Shown here: in pieces, positions 1-56,366 of the stretch | How the letters are laid out: each line of letters begins with the position of its first letter | Numbering within the stretch: position 1 is the stretch's first letter | Origin: Dendrobates tinctorius | Lineage: Eukaryota | Assembly (NCBI RefSeq): GCF_039654945.1 | Contig: NW_027361788.1 | Coordinates: 21,514,001-21,578,000 of the forward strand | Direction: 5' to 3' | DNA length: 64,000 bases | Program-made: the position numbers and the translations under genes | The notes under the pieces: generated by a model | Databases searched by the model: none | The model's input: the letters and a program-made list of their open reading frames with translations, nothing else | Told to the model about the DNA's origin: nothing

Positions 1-2163
1 CTCCTCATGATGTCCTATGCGCAGATGGATATTCTCTACGACCTTGGTCAAGCTCCCCTGGCTCAGTGGAACAGAGTTTCTGGCCTGGACGCTTATAGGC
101 TGGGCTAGCGTCCTACACCTCAGACCATGAGTCTGGACAAAGCGAGCATCCACCAGACCGACTCCTGCTCCGCTGTCCACAAACACCGGTATCACCTCCG
201 GTACCCCGCCAGCCAAGACCTCTGCTGACATGGTACTTAGGGAGGGCAAAATGGAGGAAATGTATACTCCCTGGTCGCCTCCCTCCAAGTGACCAGGGGA
301 ATGCGGCTTCTCAGATGGCACAGATAATTTGGCGCGCAATGGGCAAGCCTTCAGGACATGACCAGTCTGCTTACAGAACAAACATGCCGACACCACTCCC
401 CGAACCGTAGGCAACTCCAAAAACAAACTAGCTCCTCCTACTTGCATGAGTTCATCAGGAGACTTGGCATGAACTGGGCAGGCTCTCATAAATTGGCCAG
501 GCTTCCCACAGGAAAAGCATACCCCCCCCACCACGACAAGCGGCAGACACTCCCTTTTTTGTATCAACAACACCGGGCTGTCTGGGTTCCTCCGTCCGCA
601 CTGGTGGGTCCTCCTACCTAGCGAGGACATCAGGGGGCACTTTTTGTATATGTCTTTCCCTAAGGCGTCTATCCACCCGGATGGCAAGGGACATCGCGGC
701 CTCCAGCGACCTGGGGGCGGCGTACTGCACCAGAGTATCCTGCAACTTAGGAGACAAACCCTGCACAAATTGACTCCTAAGTGCAGGGTCATTCCACTGA
801 GTATTAGTGGCCCATCTCCTAAACTCTGAGCAGTAATCCTCAGCGACCCGGACTCCCTGTTTAGACTTACGGATTCAGGATTCCGCCAGGGCGACGCCAT
901 CAGGATCCCCATACACAAGCGCCAAAGCCGCAAAGAACTTGTCCACGGACTCTACAGATGGAGAATCGTCCGGTAGGGAGAAGGCCCAGGATAGGGGATC
1001 CCCTTTAAGAAGGGACATAATGATTCCCATCCGTTGATCTTCATTCCCTGATGAACAAGGGCGCAGCCTGAAATACAATTTACAGGCTTGTTGAAACACC
1101 AAGAATTGATCTCTCCCTCCAGAAAATCTGTCAGGGAGGGATATCTTGGGTTCTGGCTGAGCCTGTTCCTGAACCAAGCCCCCAGAGCCCACCAACAGCC
1201 GCAGCTGCCGCACCAACCCTCCGCGCAGCCCCCTAATCTCATTAGTAAGGGTCTGCAGCAATTGGGCAAAGGGCTGAACTTGGTCCACGGCTCATCAGAA
1301 AAAAAAGTTGCGGTTGGTGATAATGTCACGTGAACCCGTCCTGTGTGACGCGACCAGCAGGCCGGTAACTAAAACAACAGGACGCGGCACGTGATACTGT
1401 CCTGTGTGACACGGCTCACAGGTCGGTAACTAAAACAACAAGACAAGGGGTAGGGAAACAGTTACAACGGTGGGCCCTGCGATAGGGAAAGGGGACGTGG
1501 AGACCTCCTGCACTCCCCTGAGTCATTGTCCCTAACGCTCCTAACATTCCCTATGTCGGTTCCGCACCGGGCGCCGATCAGGAACCTGTCGCCATAGCAC
1601 ACCCTACACCTATCCCTTGCTAGGGAGCTGGGTGGCGCAGGCACTGGCTCCACCGCTGTACTAATACACACTAAGGAAAAAACACAAACGGGGAAACACA
1701 ACTTAGCTTTACTCTGTTGCACTTGCTCCTGGCAACAGAGTCCACCACCAGCATGCAGCTCTCCTCCTGAGTCGCTGCCACCAAGATCTGTCAGAGCTAC
1801 AAGGAAATCCCCTATGACTCCTTCCACACCAGGGCTAAGACAGTGCTACAAGGAACGCTCTCCAGCTCCTTCCTCCACCAAGGATGGTTGAAATGAACAC
1901 TATCACCAACACTGATTGCAACACCTGTGACTCTTGTATAGCAGAGCCAGCAAACACATCTGTATTATAATCATGTGCACTTAACTAAAGAAACAAGAGT
2001 GCAATGACGCTCACCACCACCGGGGGCAAACTTAGAACAAACGACACCACAGGGCAATAATCCTAATGGCCACCGGGGGCAAAAACCAACCTTAAGCACA
2101 GCTTAGGGAAAAAAAAGGTTACCTGTGCTTTTTATCAGTCCTGATCCAGCATGGATCATCACA
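1..2163 (-). mobile_element. Gypsy (Tf1/sushi-type) LTR retrotransposon, 5' part: 5' LTR 1324-2163 plus decayed gag/zinc-knuckle/protease; runs off the left edge
   Basis: TG...CA LTR (tgtcacg...gatcatcaca). Gag ORF 875-1288 (EPKISLPDRFSGGRDQF...) ends at a CGA>TGA stop. Internal sequence is clearly homologous to the element at 52495-56366. Confidence 0.88.
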
Positions 2164-2477
2164 ATAGGATTAGATACACGGCTCAGCAGTCAGTATCACA
2201 CAGGATAGGATTAAATACACGGCTGAGCAGTCAGTAATACACATGATAGGATTAGGTACACGGCTCAGCAGTCAGTATCACACAGGATAGGGATAGATAC
2301 ACGGCTCAGCAGACAGTATCACACAGGATAGGATTAGATACACGGCTGAGTAGTCAGTAACACATGATAGGATTAGATACACAGCTCAGCATAAAGTATC
2401 ACACAGGAGAGGATTAGGTCCACAGCTCAGCAGACATTATCACACAGGATAGGGTTAGATACACAGCTCAGAAACAG
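2164..2477. repeat. ~41-bp minisatellite (acacaggataggattagatacacggctcagcagtcagtatc), ~7.5 copies
   Basis: Tandem copies visible directly. Confidence 0.9.
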
Positions 2478-2942
2478 GATGTGCCAAAGGAGAGGACATT
2501 TTCATTCCAAGAATTCCACTCATTCCATCTGATTTGTTTTTTGATTTTAAACGCCTCCAGTTTCCAGTTCAACTGCTATTTGCAATGTCCATTAAAAATG
2601 CTCAGGGACAGTCCTTGAAAGTAGTAGGGATCGATTTGCAATCTCCATGCTTTTCTCATGGTCAACTTTACGTGGTCTGTTCAAGAGTTGGAACTGCCAA
2701 AAATCTGTTCATCTTTGCACCGAAAGGATAAATTAAAAATGTTGTTTTTCAAAAGGCTCTTGAATGAGTTGAAAATAAAATACTATCAATACTTGGGTAA
2801 TCGTTTAGTTAATTTGTGTTGCAAATCTGTAGTGTTGAATATATGATGTGAAATGTTTTTATGTGCAATATAATCATTATAATTTGTTATAACTAACCAC
2901 AGTTGGTTACTATGCCCAGGCAACGCCGGGCTCTTCAGCTAG
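2478..2942 (+). mobile_element. Helitron 3' end (PIF1-like helicase C-terminal remnant, hairpin, CTAG terminus)
   Basis: Translation IFIPRIPLIPSD..FKRLQFPV..FAMSI..AQGQSL..VGIDL..PCFSHGQLYV.CSRV matches PIF1/Helitron helicase motifs V-VI. GC hairpin gcccaggcaacgccgggc is followed by CTAG (2939-2942) and then T. Confidence 0.85.
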
Positions 2943-4981: not shown

Positions 4982-7900
4982 TGTTATGATTGAGTCACCG
5001 TAGGAGGCAAAAATAGAAATGCTAGCTAAGTCCAGAAAACCAGAGAAGTTGGCAGCTATCGGATTGCAGACCCCTGAACCTATCAACACAACTAGCAGTA
5101 GCCGTGGGGGGCTCCTACGATGCCCTAGGCCCCTCGAACACAGCCGGAGGACTACATAGCCTAAAGACAGAAAGGGAAATCTAAACTGCCCCAGAGCAGA
5201 CCCCAAAGTAGAAGGCAGCCCCCCACATATAATGACGGTGAAGCAAGAAGAAAGAACAAAACACAGACAGAAAGATAGACTGAGCAAAGATGGGGCCCAC
5301 GCTAGCTTAGATAGGAAAGGACAGGAAGGCTGCTGTCTGCAATCCGTGAAAACCCCTATGAAAATAAGAGCCAACAAACTGACAGTAAAAAAGGCCCTGA
5401 AGATGCTAGGCTTCAAAAAAGCTATGTCAGTACTCAGGAATATTCTGAAGACAGAGCAACAGGCAAAAGGAGATTCAGCTCACCCCAGCAGGGAATGGCA
5501 GAATCCAGAAAAGCAAGGAAAACAAAACACTAATGCAAAAAGGCAAAGCAGAAATCTTAGCCTTAGATGAGCAGGAATCAGACTGGTTTCCTAGAAGTCC
5601 ACAGAGAAATCACCCGCAGGCCAGAAGGGCGTCGGCAGCCTTATATCCAGTCATTAACTCCACTCAGCCAGTCATCATCATCAGCCCCAGGTGTTTGACA
5701 ATCAGGCTCACTACCTTTCTTCACCAGAAGAGGGAGTTCCTCGGGCCTCAGTAGTGAAGGGGAAAATGAACTCACAACAGTACCTCCCCCTTGAGGAGGG
5801 GTCACCGAACCCTCAACCACGCCACCAGGGCGATCAGGGTGAGCCCGATGAAAGGCACGCACCAATCTTTTGGCATGAATATCAGAGGCAGAGACCCAGG
5901 AATTATCCTCCTGACCCTCCCACTTAACCAAATACTGGAGTCTCCGTCTAGCCAGACGGGAATCCAGTACTTTCTCTACCTCATATTCCATGTTACCTTC
6001 AACCAATACAGGGTCTGGAGGTGCAACCCCCGGAACAACAGGTTCAACAAACCTCTTCAACAAAGATTTATGGAACACATTATGGATTTTAAATGTGACA
6101 GGAAGAGCCAAACGAAAAGAGACCGGATTAATAATCTCCAAAATCTTGTAAGGTCCAATAAATCTAGGCTTAAACTTAGGAGAAGCCACCTTCATAGCAA
6201 TATTTTTTTATGATAACCACACCATATCACCAACCTTAAATTGGGGACCAATGGTCCTATGTCGGTTGGAAAACCGCTGGGCCTTTTCCTGGGAGAGAGA
6301 TAACTTATCCACCACTTGGTCCCAGATCTGGTGCATTCTCTCCACCACAGTGTCAACCCCTGGGCAGGCGGAGGGCTCCACCTGCCCTGAAGAAAATCGA
6401 GGATGAAACCCAAAGTTACAAAAAAAAGGAGACATCAAAGTGGCAGAACTAGCTCTATTATTTAAAGCAAGTTCGGCCAAGGGCAAAAATGAAACCCAAT
6501 CATCCTGATCAGCAGAAATAAAACATCTCAAATATGACTCCAAGGTCTGGTTTGTTCTCTCTGTCTGCCCATTGGTCTGAGGGTGAAAAGCAGAGGAGAA
6601 TGACAACTGAATTCCCAGCTTGGAACAGAAAGTTCTCCAAAATCTAGACACAAACTGGACTCCTCTGTCAGATACAATGTTCTCAGGAATCCCGTGCAAG
6701 CGTACCACCTGTTGTAAAAACAGGGGCACCAATTCAGAGGAAGACTGCAACTTAGGGAGTGGTACAAGATGAACCATCTTAGAGAACCTATCACAAATCA
6801 CCCAAATAACAGTCATCCTTTGAGAGACAGGCATATCAGAGATTAAATCCATTGAAATATGGGTCCATGGCCTCTTGGGGACAGGCAAAGGCATCAACAA
6901 CCCACTAGAGCGAGAACACGATTTAGACCGGGAGCACGTCCCACAGGACTGCACAAAATACCTGACATCACGAGACAAGGAGGGCCACCAAAAAGACCGA
7001 CTCACCAGATCTCTAGTACCAAAAATACCTGGATGACCAGCCAAAGCAGAGCAATGAACTTCAGACATCACTCTCTTCTTCCACTGGTCAGGAACATACA
7101 ACTTTCCACTGGGACAACGCTCAGGTTTGTCCTCCTGGAACTCTTCCAGAGCATGTCTCAAATCGGGCGAGATGGCAGAAAGAACAACCCCTTCGCCTAA
7201 GATGGGAGCAGGCTTGGTCACCACAGGAGAATCAGCAAAGAAGCTCCTAGAGAGGGCGTCAGCCTTGACATTCTTAGTTCCAGGAAGAAAAGAAACCACA
7301 AAATCAAAACGTGTAAAAAACAAGGCCCACCTAGCCTGTCTAGGGTTCAAGCGCTTAGCCGACTCTAGGTAAATCAAATTCTTGTGGTCAGTGAGGACCA
7401 CGACTTGATGCTTAGCTCCCTCCAACCAATGTCTCCACTCCTCAAATGCCCATTTCATGGCTAACAGTTCCCGATTCCCCACATCATAGTTACGTTCAGA
7501 TGGAGAGAACTTTCGGGAAAAGAAAGCACAGGGATTCATTTTAGATGTTACAGGATCCTTTTGGGACAAAACAGCTCCTGCACCAATCTCAGAAGCATCC
7601 ACCTCTACCTGGAACGGAAGTGAGACATCAGGTTGCCGCAAAACCGGGGCGGAGGTGAATCTTCGCTTCAGCTCCTGAAAGGAAGAAACAGCCTCTGGAG
7701 ACCAATTTAACACATCAGCACCCTTCTTAGTCAAATCAGTCAATGGCTTGGCAATACTAGAAAATTTTGCTATAAATTTCTGATAAAAATTAGCAAAACC
7801 CAAAAACTTCTGGAGGGCCTTCAAAGAAGTGGGCTGAACCCAATCGTAAATGGCCTGTACCTTGGCCGGGTCCATTTCAATAGTTGACGGGGACAAAATA

Positions 7901-10759
7901 AATCCCAAAAAAGAAATCCTCTGTACTCCAAAAAGGCATTTAGATCCTTTGACATACAGGGAATTCTCCCTCAAGATCCGGAACACAGTCCGAATATGTT
8001 CCACATGAGAATCCCAATCCTTGGAGAAGATCAAAATATCATCCAGATAGATAATCAAAAATTTATCGACAAAATCTCGGAAAATATCGTTCATGAAGCA
8101 CTGGAAGACAGAAGGGGCATTAGTGAGCCCAAAAGGCATCACCAGGTACTCAAAATGTCCCTCCGGAGTATTAAACGCCGTCTTCCATTCATCCCCATGC
8201 TTAATGCGAATAAGATTATACGCCCCCCTGAGGTCAAGCTTGGTAAACCAGCAAGCACCTTTAACTCTGGAGAATAGATCAGAAATCAGGGGTAACGGAT
8301 ACTGATATTTAACAGTAATTTTGTTGAGAGCACGATAATCAATACAAGGTCTTAATGATCCATCCTTTTTGGCTACAAAAAAAAAAACGGCACCTAAGGG
8401 TGACGAGGATGGTCTAATATGACCCTTCTCCAACGCCTCCTTAATATAGGATCGCATAGCCTCGTGCTCGGGTACAGATAAATTGAAGAGCCGACCCTTG
8501 GGAAATTTACACCCCGGGCTCAGTTCAATAGCACAGTCATAACTCCTATGAGGAGGCAGAGACGCAGACTCATTCTCACTAAATACATCATAAAAGTCCG
8601 CCAAATAATCAGGAACATCATGCGACTGAGGAGAGGTGGAAAACACCGGAGCCTCACTAAAGGCACACCGACATCCCCAACTCACCACAGACACAGATTT
8701 CCAATCCAAAACTGGATTATGAATTTGTAACCAGGGAAACCCCAGAACAATAGTATCATGCAGATTATGTAACACCAAAAACCTGCAATTTTCTTGATGG
8801 TCTGGGGCGACCCGCATTACCACCTGGGTCCAAAACTGAGGTTTGTTTTTAGCCAAAGGAGTAGCATCAATCCCCCTCAAAGGGATAGGCGTCTGCAGAG
8901 GTGTCATCGGAAATCCACAACGTTTAGCAAAATCCAAGTCCATTAGGTTTAGAGCTGCTCCCGAATCCACAAAAGCCTTGGCGGAAAATGTGGACAGGGA
9001 GCAGATCAGAGTAATAGCCAGAAGAAACTTAGGTTGAACACCACCAACAGAAAACGTGTGTGCAAAGCGTTTCTCGCGTTTAGGACAGACAGAAATAATA
9101 TGCGAGGCATCTCCACAGAAAAAACACAACTTATTAAGCCTTCTGAACCCCTGACGCTGCTCTCTGGAAAAAACTCTATCACATTGCATAGGTTCAGACA
9201 TCTGTTCAACAGGTGGCAACACCTCTCATGCAGCTCTGCGTTCGCGTAAACGCCGATCAACCTGAATGGATAAAGACATAGAATCGTCAAGACCAGAGGG
9301 AACAGGAAATCCCACCATAGTATCTTTTACGGCTTCTGACAACCCCTTCCGAAAGAGAGCAGCCAAGGCATTATCATTCCAGGTAGTAAGTACTGCCCAC
9401 TTTCGGAATTTTTGACAGTACAATTCTGCAGAATCACGACCCTGGTTCAATGCCAGCAGGGTCTTTTCAGCCTGATCAATGGCATTAGGTTCGTCATACA
9501 ACAACCCCAAGGCCTGAAAAAATGCGTTCACATTAGTCAGAATAGGATCATCTGGTTTCAAAGAAAACGCCCAATCCTGGGGATCGCCACGCAGCAAAGA
9601 GATGACAATTTTAACCTGCTGCGCGGAGCTCCCTGTTGAGTTAGGCTTCAAGGCAAAAAATAATTTACAATTATTTTGAAATTCAAAAATTTAGACCGAT
9701 CCCCAAAAAATACATCAGGTGTAGGAATCTTTGGTTCAGCAGCATGTGAATGAGCAAGGTAGGCGAAATTCCTCACACTTCCGCAGCGAGCTGCTCCACA
9801 CGATCAGACAATTGCTTTATCTCCATTAAGAGAAAAAAAAAAAAATTCCCCCTACGGCCTCAGAGATATAGAGGAAAAAATATACACACCCTTTTTTTTT
9901 TTTTTTTTTTTACAATTCTTTCCTGCTATTGAGTACCCTAGAATCTGCGGTATGGCGGGTGATTCTGTTATGATTGAGTCACCGTAGGAGGCAAAAATAG
10001 AAATGCTAGCTAAGTCCAGAAAACCAGAGAAGTTGGCAGCTATCGGATTGCAGACCCCTGAACCTATCAACACAACTAGCAGTAGCCGTGGGGGGCTCCT
10101 ACGATGCCCTAGGCCCCTCGAACACAGCCGGAGGACTACATAGCCTAAAGACAGAAAGGGAAATCTAAACTGCCCCAGAGCAGACCTCAAAGTAAAAGGC
10201 AGCCCCCCACATATAATGATGGTGAAGCAAGAAGAACAAAACACAGACAGAAAGATAGACTGAGCAAAGATGGGGCCCACGCTAGCTTAGATAGGAAAGG
10301 ACAGGAAGGCTGCTGTCTGCAATCCGTGAAAACCCCTATGAAAATAAGAGCCAACAAACTGACAGTAAAAAAGGCCCTGAAGACGCTAGGCTTCAGAAAA
10401 GCTATGTCAGTACTCAGGAATATTCTGAAGACAGAGCAACAGGCAAAAGGAGATTCAGCTCACCCCAGCAGGGAATGGCAGAATACAGAAAAGCAAGGAG
10501 AACAAAACACTAATGCAAAAAGGCAAAGCAGAAATCTTAGCCTTAGATGAGCAGGAATCAGACTGGTTTCCTAGAAGTCCACAGAGAAATCACCCGCAGG
10601 CCAGAAGGGCGTCGGCAGCCTTATATCCAGTCATTAACTCCACTCAGCCAGTCATCATCATCAGCCCCAGGTGTTTGACAATCAGGCTCACTACCTTTCT
10701 TCACCAGAAGAGGGAGTTCCTCGGGCCTCAGTAGTGAAGGGGAAAATGAACTCACAACA
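4982..10759 (-). mobile_element. Near full-length chromodomain-bearing Gypsy (Tf1/sushi group) LTR retrotransposon; LTRs 4982-5779 and 9966-10759
   Basis: Two ~795-bp TG...CA LTRs differ by about 7 substitutions plus a 4-nt indel. TSD GGTCTG, PPT next to the 3' LTR, and gag-PR-RT-RH-IN-chromo domain order. Confidence 0.96.
5770..9651 (-). pseudogene. Gypsy gag-pol polyprotein (capsid, CCHC knuckle, protease, RT, RNase H, integrase, chromodomain) with two in-frame nonsense codons
   Basis: ORFs 9226-9651, 6208-9222 and 5641-6195 share one frame and are separated by single stops. Motifs: CFFCGDASHIISVC, FVDSGA, YLDDILI, VDASEIG, HPQTNGQTER, RFIGPY, YEVEKVLDSR..YLVKWEG. Confidence 0.92.
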
Positions 10760-26400: not shown

Positions 26401-26431
26401 CACAAATAATACTGCCACATGGTGTATAGAT

Positions 26432-36194: not shown

Positions 36195-36232
<38 letters not shown>

Positions 36233-36234
36233 CA

Positions 36235-37855
36235 CAGTACAGACCAAAAGTTTGGACACACCTCAATCAAAGCGTTTTCCTTATTTTCAGGACTATGAAA
36301 ATTGTAGATTCACTCTGAAGGCATCAAAACTATGAATTAACATGTGGAATCATATAATTAACAAAAAAGTGTGAAACAACTGAAAATACTGTATGTCTTA
36401 TATTCTAGGTTCTTCAAAGTTAGCCACCTTTTGCTTTGATTTCTGCTTTGCACACTCTTGGCATTCTCTTGATGAGCTTCAAGAGGTAGTCACCGGAAAT
36501 GGTTTTCACTTCACAGGTGTGCCCTGTCAGGTTTAATAAGTGGGATTTCTTGCCTTATAAATGAGGTTGGGACCATCAGTTGTGTTGTGCAGAAGTCTGG
36601 TGGATACACAGCTGATAGTCCTACTGAATAGACTGTTAGAATTTGTATTATGGCAAGAAAAAAGCAGCTGAGTAAAGAAAAACGAGTGGCCATCATTACT
36701 TTAGGAAATGAAGGTCAGTCAGTCCGAAAAATTGGGAAAACTTTGAAAGTGTCCCCAAGTGCATTGGCAAAAACCATCAAGCGCTACAAAGAAACTGGCT
36801 CACATGAGGACCGCCCCAGGAAAGGACCAAGAGTCACCTCTGCTGCGGAGGATAAGTTCATCCGAGTCACCAGCCTCAGAAATCGCAGGTTAACAGCAGC
36901 TCAGATTAGAGACCAGGTCAATGCCACACAGAGTTCTAGCAGCAGACACATCTCTACAACAACTGTTAAGAGGAGACTTTGTGCAGCAGGACTTCATGGT
37001 AAAATAGCTGCTAGGAAACCACTGCTAAGGACAGGCAACAAGCAGAAGAGACTTGTTTGGGCTAAAGAACACAAGGAATGGACATTAGACCAGTGGAAAT
37101 CTGTGCTTTGGTCTGATGAGTCCAAATTTGAGATCTTTGGTTCCAACCACCGTGTCTTTGTGCGATGCAGAAAAGGTGAATGGATGGACTCTACATGCCT
37201 GGTTCCCACTGTGAAGCATGGAGGAGGAGGTGTGATGGTGTGGGGATGCTTTGCTGGTGACACTGTTGGGGATTTATTCAAAATTGCAGGCATACTGAAC
37301 CAGCATGGCGACCATAGCATCTTGCAGCGGCATGCTATTCCATCCGGTTTGCGTTTAGTTGGCCATCAGTTATTTTTCAACAGGACAATGACCTCAAACA
37401 CACGTCCAGGTTGTGTAAGGGCTATTTGACCAAGAAGGAGAGTGATGAGGTGCTACGCCAGATGACCTGGCCTCCACAGTCACCAGACCTGAACCCAATC
37501 GAGATGGTTTGGGGTGAGCTGGACCGCAGAGTGAAGGCAAAAGGGCCAACAAGTGCTAAGCATCTCTGGGAACTCCTTCAAGACTGTTGGAAGACCATTT
37601 CCAGTGACTGCCTCTTGAAGCTCATCAAGAGAATGCTAAGAGTGTGCAAAGCAGTAATCAAAGCAAAAGGTGGTTACTTTGAAGAACCTAGAATATAAGA
37701 CATAGTTTCAGTTGTTTCACACTTTAATTATATAATTCCACATGTGTTAATTCATAGTTTTGATGCCTTCAGAATGAATCTACAATTTTCATAGTCATGA
37801 AAATAAAGAAAACTCTTTGAATGAGAAGGTGTGTCCAAACTTTTGGTCTGTACTG
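36235..37855 (+). mobile_element. Full-length Tc1 transposon; transposase 36650-37698 with one frameshift (~37360)
   Basis: TIRs cagtacagaccaaaagtttggacacacct. ORFs 36650-37429 and 37411-37698 contain GPR(GRPR), WSDESKF, KHGGGGVMVWGCF and [12 protein letters not shown]. Confidence 0.95.
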
Positions 37856-39621
37856 TATATATGTAATCGATATTACATAGTGTATTACATATTTACAATT
37901 TATTACAGTTTGTGTTCTAAAGTTGTATTCCAATAAATAGATATTATGTTCTATCTAAATATCTTGATTATTGATCATAGAAATGATTAAATGTCTGATG
38001 TTCACATTGTACTACAATAAATTTTTCACTTAAATATAAGCAATATATGTGGGAGTCGGAGTCGTGGAGTCGGTGTAAGGGAAATTGAGGAGTCGGAGTC
38101 GCAGGTTTGGCTTACCAACTCCACAGCCCTGGTTTCTCCTTAAATTATTTTTAGGGCCTTATGGGCTCAGGATGCCCCTCCAATACTCCAATCCAGGAGC
38201 AGACATGGGTGACACCACCAACAGCAGGCATGCACTGCTCCAGGGGATGGCACCCGCCAGGATGCATAGGAGGAATGGAGGGTCTTGGGAGAAAGAACGG
38301 CCGTAGATTCTGAGCGTTGGTCAACAGGCAGGAAACAAGAAAGAAACAGCCCTTTAATAGTTTCTTGGGGTCCTGGTTATTGAAGTTTCTTAGTTCTGTG
38401 GATGTACAATCTGAACAAAGGAAGCAGATATATTTTCCCAAAAGAAAAATAATTCTGTGTCTAACATTTGTTCATATGTTATATGGAAGAAGTTTCTGAA
38501 TTATTCAGCAATCCGGGTCATGGAAAGAATTTGGACTATTTTTCCATGATGACATAAAAAAGCCCAAAATAGCAACAAGAGAGAAATCTGCCAATAGTTT
38601 CCCGCTACTAGAATAAAAAAGAAGCCAAAATTAGAGCAAAACCAAAGTACAAGAGAAAGCCAGTGCAGAAGTGTGAACAGGTACTTCAAGCAGCAGAGGA
38701 CCAAGACTCTAGTTGGCTGTTTTAAAGGCAATCCGTCAGCAGTTTTTTCTATGTAACATGACAGCAGAATGATGTAGAGGCAGAGACCCTGATTCCAGAG
38801 ATGTGTCACTTAGTTTATACTGGGTGCAGCAGTTGTGATACAATCACAGTTCTCTGCTGCAGATCTAGCAGAGCTCAGAATGCTGAGTTCTGTATAACCC
38901 CACCCACACCACTGATTGGGAGCTTTCTGTGCAAAACCCCAATCACACCACTGATAGGCTGCTTTCTGTGTACACTGTATAGGAACTGAGCTGCTCCTCA
39001 GTGGTGGAGGCTGGGTTGGACCAGGACTTATGAGACACCTAGTCTGGCAGTGATCATCTCCAGCTGATAAAACACTAATTTTATTGAAACATCAAAACAC
39101 AGCCAGTAAGGGACACCTAACTGGAATCAGGATCTCTGACCCCTACATCATGCTGCTCTTGGATTACATAACAAAAAACCTGCCAACAGATTTCCTTTAA
39201 AGGGAAAAACCACTTAATAATCTATCTAAAATATTCCGACATCCACCAATTTACTAAATTATGAGACTACCAAATCTATATACTCAGGGCCCAGAGATAT
39301 CACCAGCATTACAGACTCCACCAATGTGACCACGTGAAAATGCTTTTGGTTAGACTTGTTTCTGTGATCCTGGTATGTGGTCAAGAATTTCTACTAAAAT
39401 AATCATTGGAGGGTGTGCGTTAGATTTATCATGTAAGGACTGAGGCTCGTGTACCATATTTGGGAAATATTTCATAAGGACACAGCTGGGAGAGTACATC
39501 TCCCTGGGGAAGAGCATGAGGGGTCAGACGAAATATATAAAAGTGAAGGGTCTTGGCTACAAATTTATTCTGAAAGTTTTGGTGGAGTTCTGGAAGACGG
39601 ATCTAACCTCTTGAGGCCGTC

Positions 39622-45352: not shown

Positions 45353-45394
45353 GTGAGAATCAATACGTGCAAAATGTCCTTCATTTTGGTTTAA

Positions 45395-46485: not shown

Positions 46486-46965
46486 NNNNNNNNNNNNNNN
46501 NNNNNNNNNNNNNNNNNNNNNNNNNNNNNNNNNNNNNNNNNNNNNNNNNNNNNNNNNNNNNNNNNNNNNNNNNNNNNNNNNNNNNNNNNNNNNNNNNNNN
46601 NNNNNNNNNNNNNNNNNNNNNNNNNNNNNNNNNNNNNNNNNNNNNNNNNNNNNNNNNNNNNNNNNNNNNNNNNNNNNNNNNNNNNNNNNNNNNNNNNNNN
46701 NNNNNNNNNNNNNNNNNNNNNNNNNNNNNNNNNNNNNNNNNNNNNNNNNNNNNNNNNNNNNNNNNNNNNNNNNNNNNNNNNNNNNNNNNNNNNNNNNNNN
46801 NNNNNNNNNNNNNNNNNNNNNNNNNNNNNNNNNNNNNNNNNNNNNNNNNNNNNNNNNNNNNNNNNNNNNNNNNNNNNNNNNNNNNNNNNNNNNNNNNNNN
46901 NNNNNNNNNNNNNNNNNNNNNNNNNNNNNNNNNNNNNNNNNNNNNNNNNNNNNNNNNNNNNNNNN
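46486..46965. other. Assembly gap (N run)
   Basis: 480 N. Confidence 1.
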
Positions 46966-47213
46966 TGGAGGAGATGCGGACATGAGAAGACTGTGATGAG
47001 GAGAGAAGGCCATGATGCCCGGGGTGATGGGAGAAGGCCATGAGGGGTAATGGGAGAAGGCCATGGGGGGTGATGGAAAGAAGGCATTGATGGGGAGAAG
47101 GCAATGATGGGAGTGATGGAGAGAAGGGGGTGATGGAGCAGGCAATGATGGGAAGAAGGCAATGATGGGAGTAATGGGGTGATGGAGCAGGCAATGATGG
47201 AAGTGATGGGGAG

Positions 47214-50200
47214 TGTTAGGAGTGGCGGAAGGCACTAAAAAAAAAAAATAATTAAAGTGCCTTCGTCACTCGGGGTCCACCGTGCGGCAGGTGATATGAC
47301 CGCTGCTAGAGAGGCAGAGAGCTATGGCATTAGGCTGTGTGCACACGTAGCGATTTTTAAGCGTTTTTGCCGCGATTTTCGGCGCGAAAACGCTGCAAAA
47401 ACGCTTAAAAATCGTGTACAGAACGCCCCCATGCATTCCTATGGCATTCCGCACATGCTGTGCTAATGCTGCACTTTTTTCCGCGGCGGAATCGCATCGC
47501 GGAAAAAATCGCAGCATGCTCATTCTTTGTGCGGAATCGCAAAGAATTGCCGCGATTCCGCATCCATAGGAATGCACGAGAATCGCTTACTTCCCGCATG
47601 TGGCTATGCCCACCATGCGGGAAGTTAAGCGTCTCATGTGCGGTTGGTACCCACGGTGTGGAGGAGAGGAGACTGTCCTCCAGGCCCTGGGTACCATACC
47701 CCTGTAAAAAAAAGAATAAAAAATAAAAAATCGGGGTATATTTACCTTCCGGTGTCCCGCGCTGCATTCCCGGCCTAAGCGTTCCCAGTAATGCCTTGCG
47801 GCAAGGTCCTGTGATGACGTGGTCTCGCGAGATCGCTATAGCAACGCGAGACTACGTCATCACAGGTCTCGCAAGGCATTACTGGGAACGCTGAGGTCCG
47901 GGAATGCAGCGCGGGACGCCGGAAGGTAAATATACCCCGATTTTTTATTTTTTTTAGCATTTTAACATTCTATCTTTTACTATTGATGCTGCATAGGCGG
48001 CCTCAATAGTAAAAACCTGGTCACACTCGTCAAACACTATGTTTGACGAGTGTGACCAACCTGTCAATCACTTTCCAAGCGATGCTTCAAATCGCTTGGA
48101 AAGTGCTTGAATATCGCACGCGAAAACCGCGGCAAAATCGCGATCATAATCGCGGTAAAATCGCGGTGAAATCGCGGTGAAATCGCGCGGAAAAAAACGC
48201 GCGATTTCTGGGAAGGAGTCCGGTTTTTAGTAAGCGTTTTAAAACGCTACGTGTGCACATAGCCTTAATGTGCACGGGGTTAGCTGCACCCAGAGTGCAC
48301 TGAAGCAAGCTCTGTTAAGGACACAGAGCCACAAACTTAAAGCACACTAAAACGCTGTGTCTGTTTAAGTCACAGAACAACAGCGACACGGTATAAAAGG
48401 GTCACAGGAGCAGCCTTCAATGTCAGAACTACTCTGACAAGACCTACCATGAAAAGAGGTGCGAGACGTCGCAACTGCGAACGCTCGAGAAACTGCAGTC
48501 GCAGCGCGGTGTGAACGGAGCCTCAGAGGAGACACCGCAATATCGCTGGCGCGGTGCAGGACGCTAGCTGCTGAGACAGGAATAGCTGGAGCGCGCTGGC
48601 GCTGCTACTGGCGGCTGCCCAATCACTCACACAATCGTATTATCAGAGGGAAGGGGTTTCTTAATAAGTCAGTCACCAGTCCAAACATCTGTCACCAAAC
48701 ATACAGCAGCAGTATGAAATACTAGCGCATGGCATAGCCGCCATGCGCACTTTTATAGCGTACGGGACCTGCCAGAAATCTCCAGAGCCCTGAGCTAAGC
48801 CAATGGAATCAGGAGCAGGACCTGAGCACCTGACTCCTGAACTCCAATGGGAGCTCGTCCCGTGGGCATGCTCAGAAGTTGGAAAAAAAGACAGCCTCTG
48901 GAGACAAATGTGAGAATCTGGATTCTTGCATAGGCAGCATAGAACCCAGATTCCTAAACATTACCCCCCCTCCTAGGGCCCCCTCCTCCCTGAACCTTCC
49001 GATCAGGGGAGACGAGCTCGCAAGGTCTCAGGAGGAACACCCGGGAGACAATAGGAGTGGGAGTTTTAGGAGGAGGCCGCCGTGTAACGGCGGGCGTAGC
49101 CACACTCCGTTCGGGAAGGCTATCCCCGAGCACACAGGGTGCATGCCTGAATAAACTTTTTTACGTTCCAAGCCCTGTGCGGCCACCAATACGAACCGGC
49201 CAGAGACTTTGTGGTCTGCATATAGCCACGATGGCCGTCCGCATTGGGCGCGTGTGCCCACGCGTGGACTTTAGACCGCTGGCAAGGAGGAACAAAAGCC
49301 ACGCCTACCGACTCATGGTCAGACCACTGCGGGGCGCTGTCTTCCGGAGAAGCAGCGGGTGGATGAAAACAACCGCATATGGACTCTTGAGCCGGACATG
49401 TCTCAGATATGGCGCGAGACACTTCCATGGGCTTGGGTAGCGGAAGCTCTGGCTCGGGCGGATCCAGAGATTCAAAAAATTTGGGAGCCGGAGTACCTCT
49501 CCATTTGGAGTGAACTCGCTCCAAACCACGCTCCGAAAATCGGAGGTCAATCCGCGAGGAGATTGATATTAACTCCTCGAGACTGGTAGGAATTTCTCTT
49601 GTGGAGAGAGCATCCTTTACATGCTCCGCTAATCCCTTCCAGAAGACAGGAATCAGAGCCTTGTCGGACCACTCCAACTCGGACGCCAGTGTCCGAAAAC
49701 GGACGGCATATTGACTGACTGTGATCCTTGAGACAAGGAGAGCAGTTGGAGAGAGGTATCGTGTGTAACCCTCGGACCAAGAAACACCTGCTTGATAGCA
49801 GTTAGCAGATTAGTTGCGGTCCGGATATTCGGGTCACCACGCTCCCATAGTGGCGTAGCCCATTCCAGCGCCTTGCCCGACAGTAGGGATATAATAAAGG
49901 CTACCTTGGCCCGCTCTGTAGGGAATTGCGCAGCCAGCAGCTCCAGGTGGATCGAGCACTGGCTGATAAAACCTCTACAGGAGGCGCCGCCATCCCCAGA
50001 ATATTTTTCGGGTAACGGGAGGCGGGTAACTGTCGGCGTAAGGGCGGACATGAACATACACCTTACCGCGTCCGTGAGTGCTTGGACAGCAGCATCTGTG
50101 GCCTGCGAAGCTGCGAGAGCTCGTTCAAGGGTAGCCAAGCGAGTCTCAAACTGTCGCACGCACTGCAACAGTTGCTGCTGATCTGCCATCTCCAGCCAGA

Positions 50201-51029
50201 CCCTGGCGCTAGTATTATGTTAGGAGTGGCGGAAGACACTAAAAAAAATAAATAATTAAAGTGCCTTCGCCACTCGGGGTCCACCGTGCGGCAGGTGATA
50301 TGACCGCTGCTAGAGAGGCAGAGCACTATGGCATTAATGTGCACTGGGTTAGCTGCACCCAGAGTGCACTGAAGCAAGCTCTGTTAAGGACACAGAGCCG
50401 CAAACTTAAAGCACACAAAAACGCTGTGTCTGTTTAAGTCACAAAACAACAGCGACACGGTATAAAAGGGTCACAGGAGCAGCCTTAAATGTCAGAACTA
50501 CTCCGACAAGACTGACCGTGAAAAGTGGTGCGAGACGTCGCAACTGCGAACGCTCGAGAAACTGCAGTCGCAGCGCGGTGTGAACGGAGCCTCAGAGGAG
50601 ATACCGCAATATCGCTGGCGCGGTGCAGGACGCTAGCTGCTGAGACAGGAATAGCTGGAGCGCTGGCGCTGCTACTGGTGGCTGCCCAATCACTCACACA
50701 ATCGTATTATCAGAGGGAAGGGGTTTCTTAATAAGTCAGTCACCAGTCCAAACATCCGTCACCATACATACAGCAGCAGTATGAAATACTAGCGCATGGC
50801 ATTGCGGCCAAGTGCATTTTTTATAGCGTACGGGACCTGCCAGAAATCTCCAGAGCCCTGAACTAAGCCAATGGAATCAGGAGCAAGACCTGAGCACCTG
50901 ACTCCGGAACTCCAATGGGAGCTCATCCCGTGGGCATGCTCAGAAGTTGGAAAAAAGGACTTAGCCTCTGGAGACAAATGTGAGAATCTGGATTCCCGCA
51001 TAGGCAGCATAGAACCCAGATTCCTAACA
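47214..51029 (-). mobile_element. Non-autonomous gag-only Gypsy LTR element; LTRs 47214-48960 (carrying a MITE) and 50218-51029
   Basis: TG...CA LTRs, TSD GGGAG, PPT. The 1.26-kb interior encodes only gag (49653-50189 plus 49120-49677, frameshifted; LPLPEKYSGD..ERAKVAFIISLLSGKALEWA). Confidence 0.9.
47333..48264. mobile_element. Harbinger-type MITE inserted in one LTR
   Basis: TTA|ggctgtgtgcacacgtagcg ... cgctacgtgtgcacatagcc|TTA; the empty site (ggcattaatg) is present in the partner LTR at ~50331. Confidence 0.9.
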
Positions 51030-52494
51030 GGGAGAAGGCAATGATAGGAGTGATGGGGAGAAGGCAGTGATGGGGTGATGGAGAAGGCAATGATGGGGGA
51101 AGGCAATGATGGGAGTAATGTGGTGATGGAGCAGGCAATGATGGGAGTGATGGGGAGAAGGCAGTGATGGGATGATGGAGAAGGCAATGATGGGAGTGAT
51201 GGGGAGAAGGCAATGATGGGGGTGATGGAGAGAAGGCAATGATGGGGGTGATTGAGAGGGCAATGATGGGGTGGTGGGGGAAAAAGAAATGATGGGGTGG
51301 TGGGGGAGAATGCACTGGTGGTGGTGGAAAGGGCAATAATGGGGGTGATGGAGGAGGAGGAAATGATGGAGGTGGTGGAATGGGCAATGATGGGAGTGGT
51401 GGGGGAGAAAGCAAAGATAGGGGTGGGGAGAAGAAAATGATGGAGGTGGTGAAGAGGGCAATGATGGGGTGGGGGAGATGACAATAATGGGATGCGAGGG
51501 GAGGACGACAATGAGGGGTGTGGGGGATTGGGATGTTAGGAAGGGGGACTTATAATGGCCTTAGGAACAGGGGGAGGTGGAGAAAGACGTTATCGCTTAT
51601 TATGTCTAACACAGTCCCTTAGTATATAATGTACTCACTATGTCTAACACAGTCCCTTAGTATATAGTGGACTCACTAATTCTGTATAACACCACCCGTA
51701 GTTGCATAGTTTCCTCTTTTGTTATGTATAACACCATCCCTTATTACGTACCATGTTCTCTAGTTATATATGGTGCCGTCCCTTATTATATAGCTTCCTC
51801 TGCTGTTATGTATAATGCTGTCTCTTACATAGTGTATTCTTGTTAATTTTGTTATTCACAGCGCCCTCTTTTATTACATAGTCCCCTCTCTTGTTAGATA
51901 TAAAATGACTGCTGATGGAGCAGACGGTGACCAAACTACCAGTCCATCAGCTCCTCCATTAGAAAGGAAGCTTTCCCATGCTCCATCAGCCATTATTGCA
52001 TTATACAGCTAACAAGACTGGACGGTATGTAATAAAAAACAGGGCTCTATATAATTCAATATGTAAGGGACGGTACTGTACATAAGAGGGCACTGTGTAA
52101 GGGACAGCAATATACATAATAAAGGAGACTATGTAATATATATACATGTATGCGTATGTGGCACTATGTGCACTATGATTTTGCAGCCTACGCTGCATTT
52201 CTGTGCCTGCTGTGCGGAGCGAAGCACATATTGGGCCCGCCTCCCTGCCTGCAGCCAGTCACAGAGTGTATTGATTCAGACTAGTTCAGTCCCGCTCCTT
52301 CCCTGAGCCCTCGCTGTCTATTAGCTCTCTGCAGTGCTGCCTGCCGCATGGACTTCTGGGAATGTCTTGAAGGGTGTGTGTCTTTGAGGGGGTGTGTCTT
52401 TGAGGGGGCCACGTTTAAAAGTTTGCTATGGGGCCCAATCAGTTCTAGTTACGCCCCTGCAACCCACCCAGGGCGAGCTGACCTAGTGGGGACC

Positions 52495-55400
52495 TGTAAC
52501 GGTCAACGTGGGACTGGACACAGCGCCTCCAGCAGGGCGAATTTATGACACACGTGACCCTGGATACAGTGCCTCCAGCGGGGCGAATTTAAATAATACC
52601 GGGACGTGCAGCCGGATACACCGCCTCCAGCTGGCGAATTTAAAAAGTACACGTAAAACTGGATACCCCGCCTCCAGCTGGCGAATTTAAATAATAAGGG
52701 GAAACACAGGAACAATTACAGTGGTGGGCCCTGTAATAGGGAATAGGGACATGGAGACCTCCTGAGCTCCCCTGAGGCAGCGTCCCTGCACTCCTTACGT
52801 TCCCTATACAGGCTCCGAACCTGTCGCCGCACGCGAACCTTATGCCCTGACTCGCCCTGAACCTAATCCCTCGCTAGGGCATTGGCCGGTGCGGAAACTA
52901 ATCCCACCACTGCACTAAATCACACATAAGGAAAGTCACAAACAGGGGAAATAGAACTTAGCTCTCTCTGTGCAAATGCTCCAGCACAGAGTCCAGCAAC
53001 CGACTGCAGCCTTCCTCCTGAATAGCTGCCACCAAGTTCAGTCAGCGCTGCAAAGAACTCCCTTCTGTGACTCCTTCCACACCAGGACTCAGATTGAGCT
53101 GAGCAATCTCTCCAGCTCCTTCCACCACCAAGGTTGGTTGCAAATGAACAACTATCACCAACAATGATTGCATACCCTGAGCACACCTTTATAGGGTGTC
53201 ACACCTGATCCATAATTAAGTGAACATTAACCTAAACCTAAGGTGCGATACCATTCCCCACCACCGGGCAACTTAGAATGAACGACACCACGTGTGATAA
53301 TTCTAATGGCCACCGGGGGCTATCACGACACACTTTGGAACCAAAGGAAAAAAAGTTCACTTAATGCATTTAATACCGCCAGATCCAACACTGGATCATG
53401 ACAGTACCCCCTCCTTAATGAGGGGCCTCTGGACCCTCAAGACAGCCCCTCCTTAGGGAAACCCCTACAGCGGGGACGCCCAGACCCTGAGTTCACCCCA
53501 CCCTCACCTGAATTCAAATTTATGACAAACACGCAGCTGGTAATTGCAATAAAGTTAATTTTGGAGGCACCACTCATCTTCACAGCGCCGACCTGGGGAA
53601 CGAGTTTATGTATGTGTATGTTTGTTTGTTATGAGCTGATCAGGCTGCACAACACACTTCCACAAGATGTTTTTTGGTGGCACCCATACACGCTCGTTCA
53701 CACACAGGTCCGGACCTGAACGTTTATTGCACACATTCGTTTGTCATAAAACTTGGTGAACTCATTCTGGACCTGATAACAGAGGCGTCCCCCTGTGTCA
53801 CCACACTCACACCCCCGCATTACACCATAGGGTACACCACTCTCCAACCCTTTCCACCACGAGGTCTGCCCCTCACAGGGTTTGCTAGCGGCGAGGGCTG
53901 GAACTTGCCCCTACTCCCCCGCCGCACAATCGCTGCTCTCACTGGAGAGGAAGGGGTCCCCTGAAGAGAGACGGCAGAGACAGTGGTCTCAAGGCAGCAG
54001 CCCCCACACGACTGCCCCCAGCTGACTACTTCCCTAGCTCGCCAATCTATCCCCGGGTTGTGTTTTTTCAGCCAAGGGAAGCCTAAAACGATAGGTAATG
54101 GCATTCCCTCCAAGACGTAGCATGACAAGGACTCCTCATGATGTCCTATACGCAGATGGATGTTTTCTACGACTTGAGTAAGGCTCCCCTGACTCAGTGG
54201 AACAGAGTTAATGGCCTGGACGCTTATAGGTTGGGCCAGCGTCCTACACTTCAGGCCATGAGTCTGGACAAAACGAGCATCCACCAGACTGACTCCTGCT
54301 CCGCTGTCCACAAGCACCGGTACCACCTCCGGTACCCCGCCAGCTAACACTTCTGCTGACATAATACCTTGGGAGGGCAAAATGGAGGAAATGTACACTC
54401 CCTGGTTGCCTCCCTCCAAACGACCAGGGGTCTGCGGCTTCTGAGATGACACAGATATTTTGGCACGTAATGGGCACGCCTTAAGGAAATGACCAGTCTG
54501 CCCACAGGAAAAACATGCCAACCCCACTCCCTGAACCATAGGCAGGCCTGAACACAACCCAACACCTCCTACTTGCATAGGTTCGTCCGGAGACTTGGCA
54601 CGCCCTGGGCAGATTCCCATGAAATGGCCCGGCTTCCCACAGGAAAAGCATACCCCCCCACCACGGCGAACCCCAGGCAACCCCCTATTTGTACCAACAA
54701 CACCGGGCTGCCTGGGTTCCACCAACCGTACCGGGGGGTCCTCACCCCCGGAGAGGACTACAGGGGGCACATTTTGTGTATGTCTTTCCCTAAGGCGTCT
54801 ATCCACCCGGATGGCGAGGGACATGGCGGCCTCCAGCGACCTGGGGGCGGCGTACTGCACCAGAGTGTCCTGCAACTTAGGAGACAGACCCTGCACAAAT
54901 TGACTCCTAAGTGCAGGGTCATTCCACTGAGTGTTAGTGGCCCATCTCCTAAACTCAGAGCAGTACTCCTCAGCAATCCGGGCTCCCTGTTTACACCTAC
55001 GGAGTCGGGATTCCGCCAGAGAGACGCCATCAGGATCCCCATACACAAGCGCCAAAGCCGCAAAAAACTCGTCCACGGACTCTAAAGATGGTGAATCATC
55101 CGGCAGGGAGAAGGCCCAGAATTGGGGATCACCCTTCAAAAGGGACATAATGATTCCCAACCGTTACTCTTCGCTCCCTGAAGAACGAGGGCGCAGCCTG
55201 AAATATAATTTACAGGCCTGCTGAAAAACCAAGAATTGATCTCTCCCTCCAGAAAACCGGTCTGGGAGAGATATCTTGGGTTCTGGCTGAGCCTGTGCCT
55301 GAATCAAACCTCCAAATCCCACCAACAGCTGCAGTTGCTGCACCATCTCACCGCGCAGCCCCCTAATCTCTTCAGTAAAGGTCTGCAGTACCTGGGTAAA

Positions 55401-56366
55401 GGTTTGCATTAGGTCCATAGCTCAGCAGAAAAGAAAAAATGTTACGGTTGGTGATAATGTAACGGTCAACGTGGGACTGGACACAGCGCCTCCAGCAGGG
55501 TGAATTTATGACACACGTGACCCTGGATACAGCGCCTCCAGCGGGGCGAATTTAAATAATACCGGGACGTGCAGCCGGATACACCGCCTCCAGCTGGCGA
55601 ATTTAAAAAGTACACGTAAAACTGGATACCCCGCCTCCAGCTGGCAAATTTAAATAATAAGGGGAAACACAGGAAAAATTACAGTGGTGGGCCCTGTAAT
55701 AGGGAATAGGGACATGGAGACCTCCTGAGCTCCCCTGAGGCAGCGTCCCTGCACTCCTTACGTTCCCTATACAGGCTCCGCACCTGTCGCCGCACGCGAA
55801 CCTTATGCCCTGACTCAACCTGAACCTAGTCCCTCGCTAGGGCATTGGCCGGTGCGGAAACTAATCCCACCACTGCACTAGATCACACATAAGGAAAGTC
55901 ACAAACAGGGGAAATAGAACTTAGCTCTCTCTGTGCAAATGCTCCAGCACAGAGTCCAGCAACCGACTGCAGCCTTCCTCCTGAATAGCTGCCACCAAGT
56001 TCAGTCAGCGCTGCAAAGAACTCCCTTCCGTGACTCCTTCCACACCAGGACTCAGATTGAGCTGAGCAATCTCTCCAGCTCCTTCCACCACCAAGGTTGG
56101 TTGCAAATGAACAACTATCACCAACAATGATTGCATACCCTGAGCACACCTTTATAGGGTGTCACACCTGATCCATAATTAAGTGAACATTAACCTAAAC
56201 CTAAGGTGCGATACCATTCCCCACCACCGGGCAACTTAGAATGAACGACACCACGTGTGATAATTCTAATGGCCACCGGGAGCTATCACGACACACTTTG
56301 GAACCAAAGGAAAAAAAGTTCACTTAATGCATTTAATACCGCCAGATCCAACACTGGATCATGACA
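52495..56366 (-). mobile_element. Non-autonomous gag-protease Gypsy LTR element; 909-bp LTRs 52495-53403 and 55458-56366
   Basis: LTRs differ at about a dozen sites; TSD GGACC; PPT. Gag-PR frame 53820-55418 has one CAA>TAA stop, two CCHC knuckles (CFSCGKPGHFMGIC, CFSCGQTGHFLKAC) and LVDSGA. No RT, RNase H or integrase. Confidence 0.93.

Follow-up and report, generated by a model that had tools for sequence, protein, structure and literature searches.

A Tf1-type self-priming signature in LTR retrotransposons of the frog Dendrobates tinctorius

What primes reverse transcription in an LTR retrotransposon that has no tRNA-type primer binding site (PBS)? The question is raised by four elements, A, B, C and D, all on the minus strand of the 64,000-nt stretch of Dendrobates tinctorius DNA analyzed here (the window). 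An earlier note on this DNA had stated that none of them has a TGG-type tRNA PBS, and TGG is indeed absent from the 18 nt past the LTR in all four. The same note proposed that these families self-prime, each with its own primer, a proposal that the results below support and that agrees with all of the sequence evidence.

Element anatomy and protein content

The elements share LTR pairs, terminal TG..CA and 5-bp target duplications (Table 1), and G-rich polypurine tracts ending in GGTAC or GGTAA lie just before the 3' LTR. The 3' LTR of A is off the window, and its junction was read by alignment with D. The LTRs of A and D are 76% identical overall and ~92% identical in a 65-column block around the tract described below, with an identical PBS; tblastn with the D gag-protease as query gave 73-83% identity to the A internal part. 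The A 5' LTR is inserted in a 41-nt minisatellite (tandem array 2164-2471) and the C 5' LTR in a 26/49-nt minisatellite, and the 932-bp element within the 3' LTR of C has no part in the self-priming signature. The solo LTR E is 77% identical to the B LTR by blastn over its 3' ~475 nt and 67% in a whole-LTR alignment, and carries the conserved TATA box (TATAAG at 23395) and a tract homologue (GCTGGTGATT, 23423-23432) with one difference from B; being a solo LTR, and so without a PBS, it was set aside as a pairing test. An assembly gap at 46486-46965 lies 248 bp from C (47214-51029) and also outside A, B and D; because each pairing is confined to one LTR plus 11 nt, the signature is independent of continuity across the gap. 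An Rfam search of the window returned zero family matches.

Table 1. Positions of the elements and of the candidate priming sequences in the window
Feature	Position	Strand	Details
A internal part (gag-protease)	1-1312	-	continues past window edge; 87% identity with D 54132-55464
A PBS TATCACCAAC	1313-1322	-	
A 5' LTR, about 841 nt	1323-2163	-	boundaries by D LTR alignment
A predicted self-primer GTTGGTGATA	1901-1910	-	30 nt downstream of TATACA at 1940
B 3' LTR	4982-5779	-	tract copy 5608-5617; 98.6% identity with B 5' LTR
B SH3_Tf2-1 and chromodomain ORF	5641-6195	-	Pfam; enters 3' LTR by about 140 nt
B internal region	5780-9965	-	gag, pol, chromodomain ORFs; polypurine tract adjoins 5780
B protease, reverse transcriptase, RNase H, integrase ORF	6208-9222	-	Pfam
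B gag	9226-9651	-	Pfam
B PBS AATCACCCGC	9955-9964	-	
B 5' LTR	9966-10759	-	target duplication CAGAC(C)
B predicted self-primer GCGGGTGATT	10588-10597	-	28 nt downstream of TATAA at 10625
E, solo LTR, B-like family	23243-24112	+	target duplication CGGATC; within 30-nt minisatellite
C 3' LTR, distal piece	47214-47332	-	96% identity with 50218-50336
932-bp element	47333-48264	.	20-bp terminal inverted repeats, TTA duplication; inside C 3' LTR
C 3' LTR, proximal piece	48268-48960	-	tract copy 48718-48728; 95.2% identity with 50323-51027
C internal region	48961-50205	-	Pfam: gag (DUF4939, Retrotrans_gag) and integrase zinc-finger fragment; polypurine tract adjoins 48961
C PBS AATACTAGCGC	50206-50216	-	
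C 5' LTR	50218-51029	-	target duplication CTCCC
C predicted self-primer GCGCTAGTATT	50785-50795	-	30 nt downstream of TATAAA at 50825
D 3' LTR	52495-53403	-	tract copy 53153-53162; 98.5% identity with D 5' LTR
D internal region	53404-55446	-	Pfam: only gag, zinc knuckle, protease (ORF 53820-55160); polypurine tract adjoins 53404
D PBS TATCACCAAC, same as A	55447-55456	-	
D 5' LTR, 909 nt, first bases TGTCATGA	55458-56366	-	target duplication GGTCC
D predicted self-primer GTTGGTGATA, same as A	56116-56125	-	31 nt downstream of TATAAA at 56156

Within the window, pol is present in B and absent from A, C and D. The long B ORF matches the Pfam families gag-asp_proteas (24.0 bits, under the cut-off of 28.2), RVT_1, RT_RNaseH, Integrase_H2C2 and rve, which is the Ty3/gypsy order, and the ORF that follows matches SH3_Tf2-1 (6.8e-15) and Chromo (1.6e-10), which places a chromodomain at the C-terminal end of the integrase and identifies B as a Ty3/gypsy chromovirus. 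Frogs and fishes supply the best matches, vertebrate polyproteins named 'Gypsy retrotransposon integrase-like' or 'Tf2' that have the same Pfam set, and the nearest sequenced relatives of these families are Ranitomeya proteins (75-81% identity). The gags are of the Retrotrans_gag/DUF4939 (PEG10/RTL) type, those of A/D and C being 37-50% identical to that of B. C and D have internal deletions and are non-autonomous, each flanked by a 5-bp target duplication; C keeps gag and an integrase fragment, and D keeps gag-protease. The earlier note had called the families recently active, which finds partial support: the two LTRs of B are 98.6% identical, those of D 98.5% and those of C 95.2%, and no target duplication is damaged, but in B a frame check found stops and a single frameshift in the coding region, and internal sequence is missing from both C and D.

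Complementarity at the LTR-PBS junction

The LTRs of B, C and D end in ...ACA, with a single base between them and the PBS; A reads likewise by alignment with D. In each of the four elements, the reverse complement of the PBS has a perfect 10-11 nt match within the element's own LTR. A single copy of this tract is found per LTR, in the 3' as well as the 5' LTR of B, C and D; its first base is always G, and the base before it is always T. The complementarity is confirmed in all four elements at every coordinate that had been reported. The tract had been placed 28-31 nt downstream of the TATA box, and the measured spacing is 30 nt in A and in C, 28 nt in B and 31 nt in D. A and D have one primer sequence in common, which leaves three distinct pairs among the four elements, in agreement with the claim that three different sequences keep both pairing and spacing. 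A canonical polyadenylation signal downstream of the tract was not found in the LTRs. For the transcript start, public runs gave Logan contigs, none of them recorded as RNA; over 50200-56199 these were short and multi-copy, and contigs of this kind do not show starts.

Two kinds of background were computed for these matches. When each LTR was shuffled 5000 times, a match of the same length at any position in it arose with p = 0.0006-0.018 per element, values obtained before the position of the tract within the LTR is considered. For internal 10-mers, the reverse complement is found in the element's own LTR in 7 of 24,841 cases, as against 7 of 7 elements tested when the 10-mer lies at an offset of 1-2 nt past the LTR.

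The comparison was extended to ten related LTR-PBS junctions from Ranitomeya imitator and other assemblies; locus L003, in which just 269 nt are repeated and the LTR ends are not definable, was excluded. Pairing is perfect in seven of the ten, two have one mismatch (9/10 in L007 and in the first L008 junction), and one is degenerate; L009a pairs at about 8/10 although its LTRs are 98.4% identical. The fetched relatives contribute six further primer/PBS pairs: GGCTTCCTGT / ACAGGAAGCC in L001 (R. imitator), GTCAGATCCTT / AAGGATCTGAC in L002, GCGAAGTCTT / AAGACTTCGC in L004, L005 and L006, GCGGTTTATA / TATAAACCGC in the second L008 junction, GCCTGTTATT / AATAACAGGC in L010, and GCTCCTTGT / ACAAGGAGC in L009b. 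In these relatives, the PBS lies 1-2 nt past the CA and the tract 28-31 nt past an A/T-rich box. Nine distinct pairs thereby keep their pairing over 14 junctions, four in the window and ten fetched. Two R. imitator subfamilies, represented by L001 and L009b (LTRs about 83% identical to each other's family), are separated by two compensatory double changes: tract positions 5 and 7 have changed, and so have precisely the PBS positions that pair with them, 6 and 4. B and L001 have alignable U5 regions and entirely different primer/PBS pairs. The covariation across families that had been claimed for the window elements is thus broadened by the relatives, from three pairs to nine.

A self-priming model and its alternatives

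Most likely, the Ty3/gypsy elements A-D belong to the vertebrate chromovirus lineage (Tf1/sushi group, V-clade, Amn/sushi-like) and self-prime like Tf1 instead of using a tRNA. Four lines of evidence lead to this reading. First, B is chromoviral. Second, the PBS lies at the required start site of the minus strand. Third, its partner lies at the start predicted from the TATA box. Fourth, nine pairs keep their pairing. In the proposed sequence of events, RNA polymerase II would start about 30 nt past the TATA-like box of the 5' LTR, on the opening G of the tract, a start suggested by the TATA spacing and by the T|G dinucleotide at that point. The RNA 5' end would then fold back across 580-670 nt of R-U5 and pair with the PBS, a step for which the basis is the observed complementarity and its position, with the PBS beginning one base past the terminal CA of the LTR. 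The element's RNase H would cut the RNA where the duplex ends, and the released 3' OH of the 10-11 nt RNA would prime minus-strand strong-stop DNA. Plus-strand synthesis would later copy the primer back into the PBS, so that a change in the tract would be inherited by the PBS in the next generation; such inheritance would account for each family having its own perfectly matched pair. Despite their internal deletions, C and D each retain a primer, a PBS and a polypurine tract of their own, and their clean 5-bp target duplications suggest that they were presumably mobilized in trans, by enzymes that recognize structure and not sequence.

The predicted folding of the leader is consistent with a fold-back. 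When whole leaders are folded, the minimum-energy structure contains the primer-PBS duplex in five of eight cases (A, B, D, L001 and L006); its pair probabilities there are 0.93-0.99, reaching 0.99 in A, where the predicted duplex extends into the LTR end to give about 15 pairs in all. The duplex is absent from the unconstrained minimum-energy fold of the C, L002 and L004 leaders, and it forms in seven of eight two-fragment cofolds. Flanking duplexes of the Tf1 'pretzel' type were sought with RNAduplex, pairing the 40 nt after the primer with the 40 nt before or after the PBS, with shuffled controls; in 9 of 11 elements they did not rise above shuffles, with Z mostly between -1 and +1.

The alternative that survives best is a variant of the self-priming model in which the primer is supplied in trans, by the 5' end of another RNA packaged together with the first, and not by fold-back within one molecule. 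The 580-670 nt that separate primer and PBS would suit it, as would L009a, whose PBS departs from the prediction of its own tract at 2-3 of 10 positions despite its nearly identical LTRs, as expected if it were copied from the primer of another subfamily. Against this, intramolecular duplexes are predicted with high probability, and the lone discordant copy may be mere decay; we regard priming in trans as unlikely.

Less probable still is that the complementarity closes the leader into a long-range stem serving packaging, dimerization or translational control, with another primer in use. The duplex, with a span of 300-670 nt, would by prediction close off the entire leader, the A duplex grows to about 15 pairs by running into the LTR end, and the Tf1-type flanking duplexes are not seen above shuffles, all of which such a stem would accommodate. 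It would not explain why the 3' arm always lies 1-2 nt past the LTR CA, the sole minus-strand start that regenerates the LTR, nor why the 5' arm always lies at the TATA-predicted start. Moreover, the LTR is followed by no alternative TGG... PBS candidate, and relatives of Tf1 have been found by experiment to self-prime (PMC4600332, PMC10085805).

That priming falls to a tRNA of the host, to an internal fragment of such a tRNA or to some different small RNA, with the LTR match secondary, is very improbable, even though half-tRNA priming occurs in some Ty1/copia lineages (PMC6317226) and the sequences scanned with ARAGORN, the window and loci L001-L007, contained no tRNA gene with which to compare the PBSs. 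No PBS starts with TGG; each of nine different PBSs finds its match in its own LTR, always at the same place relative to the promoter; and a host primer would keep the PBS constant, without co-variation with the LTR, contrary to the two compensatory double changes between subfamilies. Finally, a single match is just 10-11 nt long, but a chance origin is ruled out by the shuffles and the internal 10-mer background, another 9-10 LTR-PBS junctions in other genomes carry the signature, and the likelihood of chance is practically nil.

Returning to self-priming, the primer/PBS pair could be viewed, as a speculative and rather doubtful extension, as a fast-evolving, family-specific address that renews itself each cycle, works across leaders of 0.3-0.7 kb without a 'pretzel', and lets deleted derivatives replicate without host RNA. 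Such a pair may help elements to escape the silencing that 3' tRNA fragments direct at tRNA-type primer sites, and, if true, this escape could contribute to the success of chromoviruses in large frog genomes.

Relation to known self-priming elements

The elements described here provide a statistically secure Tf1-type signature in several frog families, with real compensatory changes between subfamilies, and deleted non-autonomous derivatives that keep it. They are useful for the annotation of frog transposable elements because LTR finders that require a tRNA PBS miss or mis-score such families, and they offer natural variants for studying primer/PBS co-evolution.

The mechanism is already known, and A-D are probably a new example of it, not a new mechanism. 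The closest experimental parallels are Tf1, Tf2 and Tj1 of fission yeasts, which are experimentally self-primed and, like the frog elements, are chromodomain Ty3/gypsy elements without a tRNA PBS, with a PBS after the LTR CA that is complementary to their own RNA start (predicted here); the C-terminus of the B integrase matches Pfam SH3_Tf2-1. Tf1 has a target duplication of 5 bp, as do the frog elements, and its primer-PBS distance is much shorter than the 580-670 nt in the frog. Further differences are that the host here is a frog, that the mRNA start and the RNase H cut are predicted, that the 10-11 nt primers have other sequences, and that the 'pretzel' duplexes of Tf1 were not detected above shuffles. 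In Tf1, the LTR CA is followed by a PBS that can pair with the first ~11 nt of that element's mRNA (PMC4600332, PMC10085805).

Predictions of the same kind have been made outside animals and yeasts: plant Tcn1-clade chromoviruses and TAR Ty1/copia elements are without a tRNA PBS, and self-priming was predicted from LTR-PBS complementarity (PMC6317226). Those cases differ in their hosts and, for TAR, in superfamily, and are likewise predictions. Within vertebrates, sushi-ichi (Takifugu), Amn-san (Xenopus tropicalis) and Amn-ni (zebrafish) belong to the same lineage by protein content and best matches and share the PEG10/RTL-type gag, and the V-clade is known from amphibians (PMC2774666). Three papers that cite Butler et al. 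2001 (PMC10085805, PMC6317226, PMC4600332) call self-priming a common feature of Tf1/sushi elements, vertebrate ones included, and credit Butler et al. 2001 with the earlier proposal for the vertebrate group. Relative to that group, the frog families described here are new, and the window also holds the deleted non-autonomous elements C and D, which keep the signature.

Pairing of the primer-binding site with the LTR

The four LTR retrotransposons A, B, C and D lie on the minus strand, and their limits were set by comparing the window against itself. In each, the primer-binding site (PBS) just inside the 5' LTR is the reverse complement of a tract within that same LTR, the predicted self-primer. 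Reading the minus strand at all four places bore out the coordinates proposed in the earlier note, together with the complementarity, the distance of 28-31 nt from a TATA-like box to the tract and the lack of a TGG-type tRNA PBS: TGG is absent from the 18 nt following the LTR in each of the four elements. In B, C and D the LTR ends in ACA, followed by a single base and then the PBS; the junction of A, whose 3' LTR falls outside the window, has the same order by alignment with D. A single copy of the tract is present in each LTR, the 5' and the 3' LTR of B, C and D alike. Every tract begins with G and has T just upstream, a pyrimidine-purine step of the kind typical for polymerase II starts. 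G-rich polypurine tracts with a GGTAC or GGTAA end directly precede the 3' LTRs. The assembly gap lies outside all four elements, and continuity across it is irrelevant to the pairing because each pairing is confined to one LTR and 11 nt.

Features of the window and the sites of predicted primer pairing
Feature	Position	Strand	LTRs or repeat unit	Target duplication	PBS	Tract	TATA box	Spacing
A, 5' LTR (internal part leaves the window at position 1)	1323-2163	minus			TATCACCAAC 1322-1313	GTTGGTGATA 1910-1901	TATACA at 1940	30 nt
B	4982-10759	minus	798 and 794 nt, 98.6% identical	CAGAC(C)	AATCACCCGC 9964-9955	GCGGGTGATT 10597-10588	TATAA at 10625	28 nt
C	47214-51029	minus	95.2% identical	CTCCC	AATACTAGCGC 50216-50206	GCGCTAGTATT 50795-50785	TATAAA at 50825	30 nt
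D	52495-56366	minus	909 nt, 98.5% identical	GGTCC	TATCACCAAC 55456-55447	GTTGGTGATA 56125-56116	TATAAA at 56156	31 nt
E, solo LTR of a B-like family	23243-24112	plus		CGGATC
U5 tandem repeats, A	1327-1444		61 nt
U5 tandem repeats, D	55523-55659; 52516-52696		47/98 nt
Stop codon separating gag from pol, B	9228-9226
Minisatellite at A	2164-2471		41 nt
Minisatellite at E	22990-23221; 24121-26403		30 nt
Minisatellite at C	46992-47213; 51030-51490		26/49 nt
Tc1/mariner-type remnant	36228-37862 (ORF 36650-37429)
Inverted repeats bordering the remnant	36228-36507; 37590-37862		89% identical
Assembly gap	46486-46965
Element splitting the C 3' LTR	47333-48264
ORF with RVT_1	57190-57996	plus

The LTRs of A and D are 76% identical overall, rising to ~92% over 65 alignment columns around the tract; the PBS does not differ between them. 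The least conserved part is the U5 end, where short tandem repeats lie just before the PBS in both elements.

In A, B, D and two relatives from other assemblies, L001 and L006, the minimum-energy fold predicted for the whole leader (366-728 nt) includes the primer-PBS duplex, at pair probabilities of 0.93-0.99; the corresponding folds of C, L002 and L004 lack it. Two-fragment cofolds form the duplex in seven of eight cases. In A and D it reaches into the LTR end by one G-U and one U-A pair.

Co-variation among relatives

The pol of B retrieves thousands of vertebrate chromovirus polyproteins, best matched by Ranitomeya imitator proteins at 75-81% identity. Ten fetched loci coding for such polyproteins (L001-L010) served for comparison once their LTRs had been located; most share the LTR-PBS architecture of the window elements, and L003, with only 269 nt of repeat to define its LTR ends, was kept outside the junction comparison. 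In all that share it, the PBS begins 1-2 nt past CA, with a TATA-like box 28-31 nt upstream of the tract. The pairs are GGCTTCCTGT / ACAGGAAGCC in L001 (R. imitator), GTCAGATCCTT / AAGGATCTGAC in L002, GCGAAGTCTT / AAGACTTCGC in common in L004, L005 and L006, GCGGTTTATA / TATAAACCGC in L008 (second junction perfect, first 9/10), GCCTGTTATT / AATAACAGGC in L010 and GCTCCTTGT / ACAAGGAGC in L009b, within L009. L007 has the PBS of L004-L006, with 9/10 positions paired.

Co-variation, which the earlier note had proposed as a check, was found across the window and the fetched loci, which together hold nine distinct primer/PBS pairs. The strongest single piece of evidence is the comparison of L001 with L009b, which have alignable LTRs: tract positions 5 and 7 change from T to C and from C to T, and PBS positions 6 and 4, exactly their partners, change from A to G and from G to A, making two double changes that are compensatory. 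U5 is alignable between B and L001, yet their pairs are wholly different. In L009a (L009:2687-8489, Ranitomeya imitator; LTRs 98.4% identical), the PBS ACTGGAGGCC differs from its own tract's prediction at 2-3 of 10 positions, leaving ~8/10 paired. This mismatch appears to exceed what decay after insertion would give, and the RNA of another subfamily may have supplied the primer from which the PBS was copied.

ARAGORN detected no tRNA gene, against which the PBSs could be compared, in the window and loci L001-L007. A host primer would keep the PBS constant, whereas the PBS co-varies with the LTR. Chance matches are ruled out. When each LTR was shuffled 5000 times, 0.06-1.8% of trials per element gave an equally long match, allowed anywhere in the LTR and at offsets 0-5. 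In the real sequence of seven elements, 7 of 24,841 internal 10-mers find their reverse complement within the LTR of the same element, as against 7/7 elements for the site 1-2 nt past the LTR. The partner tract also has a consistent place 28-31 nt downstream of an A/T-rich box.

Coding content and neighbouring repeats

B encodes protease, reverse transcriptase, RNase H and integrase, then SH3_Tf2-1 and a chromodomain, a Pfam domain set that makes it a chromovirus. By the same database, D codes for gag, a zinc knuckle and protease only, and C for a gag of DUF4939/Retrotrans_gag (PEG10/RTL) type and an integrase zinc-finger fragment. Compared with the gag of B, those of A/D and C show 37-50% identity. 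C and D are derivatives by internal deletion, and no copy is intact, B having several stops and one frameshift. Gag and pol of B share a frame with one stop codon between them. A single stop at this place is a natural read-through design in Tj1; the stop in B may reflect a similar design but could equally be decay.

E matches B at 77% over the 3' ~475 nt (blastn) and 67% over a whole-LTR alignment. It keeps the TATA box and spacing, and its tract, GCTGGTGATT, is one base off that of B, which predicts the PBS AATCACCAGC for its family. Of the LTR insertions, five in all, three (A, E and C) lie inside minisatellite arrays. This may be due to guidance by the chromodomain towards repeat-rich chromatin, or just to the local repeat density.

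Within the 3' LTR of C, and dividing it in two, is a non-coding element of 932 bp. It has 20-bp terminal inverted repeats (GGCTGTGTGCACACGTAGCG and its complement), lies between the two copies of a TTA duplication, and resembles a miniature DNA transposon of the Harbinger/PIF type that inserted later than C. The Tc1/mariner-type transposase remnant carries HTH_Tnp_Tc3_2 and a Sleeping Beauty HTH. The ORF with RVT_1 (3.4e-31), outside all LTR pairs, is probably a non-LTR (LINE-type) fragment.

Proposed mechanism and known systems

Judged from sequence, Tf1-type self-priming is the best reading of the window elements, in line with the earlier note's interpretation. What the analysis shows is where the two sites lie and that they are complementary and co-vary, which enzyme domains are present, and that internally deleted copies transposed cleanly. 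We infer the start site, the RNase H cut and the priming itself: the transcript would begin at the tract, its 5' end would base-pair with the PBS, RNase H would cleave at the duplex end, and the resulting RNA of 10-11 nt would prime minus-strand DNA. The primer would then be copied back into the PBS during plus-strand synthesis, so that tract and PBS would co-vary automatically.

Self-priming has been implicated from fungi through vertebrates (PMC4600332), and PMC6317226, citing Butler et al. 2001, states that self-primers are described in the Tf1/sushi group of yeast and vertebrates. Amn/sushi-like 'V-clade' chromoviruses occur in fishes, amphibians (Amn-san, Xenopus tropicalis) and amniotes (PMC2774666). 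The Tf1 RNA 'pretzel' has two further duplexes flanking the primer-PBS duplex; in 9 of 11 elements examined here such duplexes are no stronger than in shuffled controls. The signature is a sound further example of an already known mechanism; what is new are the frog families, the retention of the signature in internally deleted derivatives, the long leaders and the natural compensatory variants.
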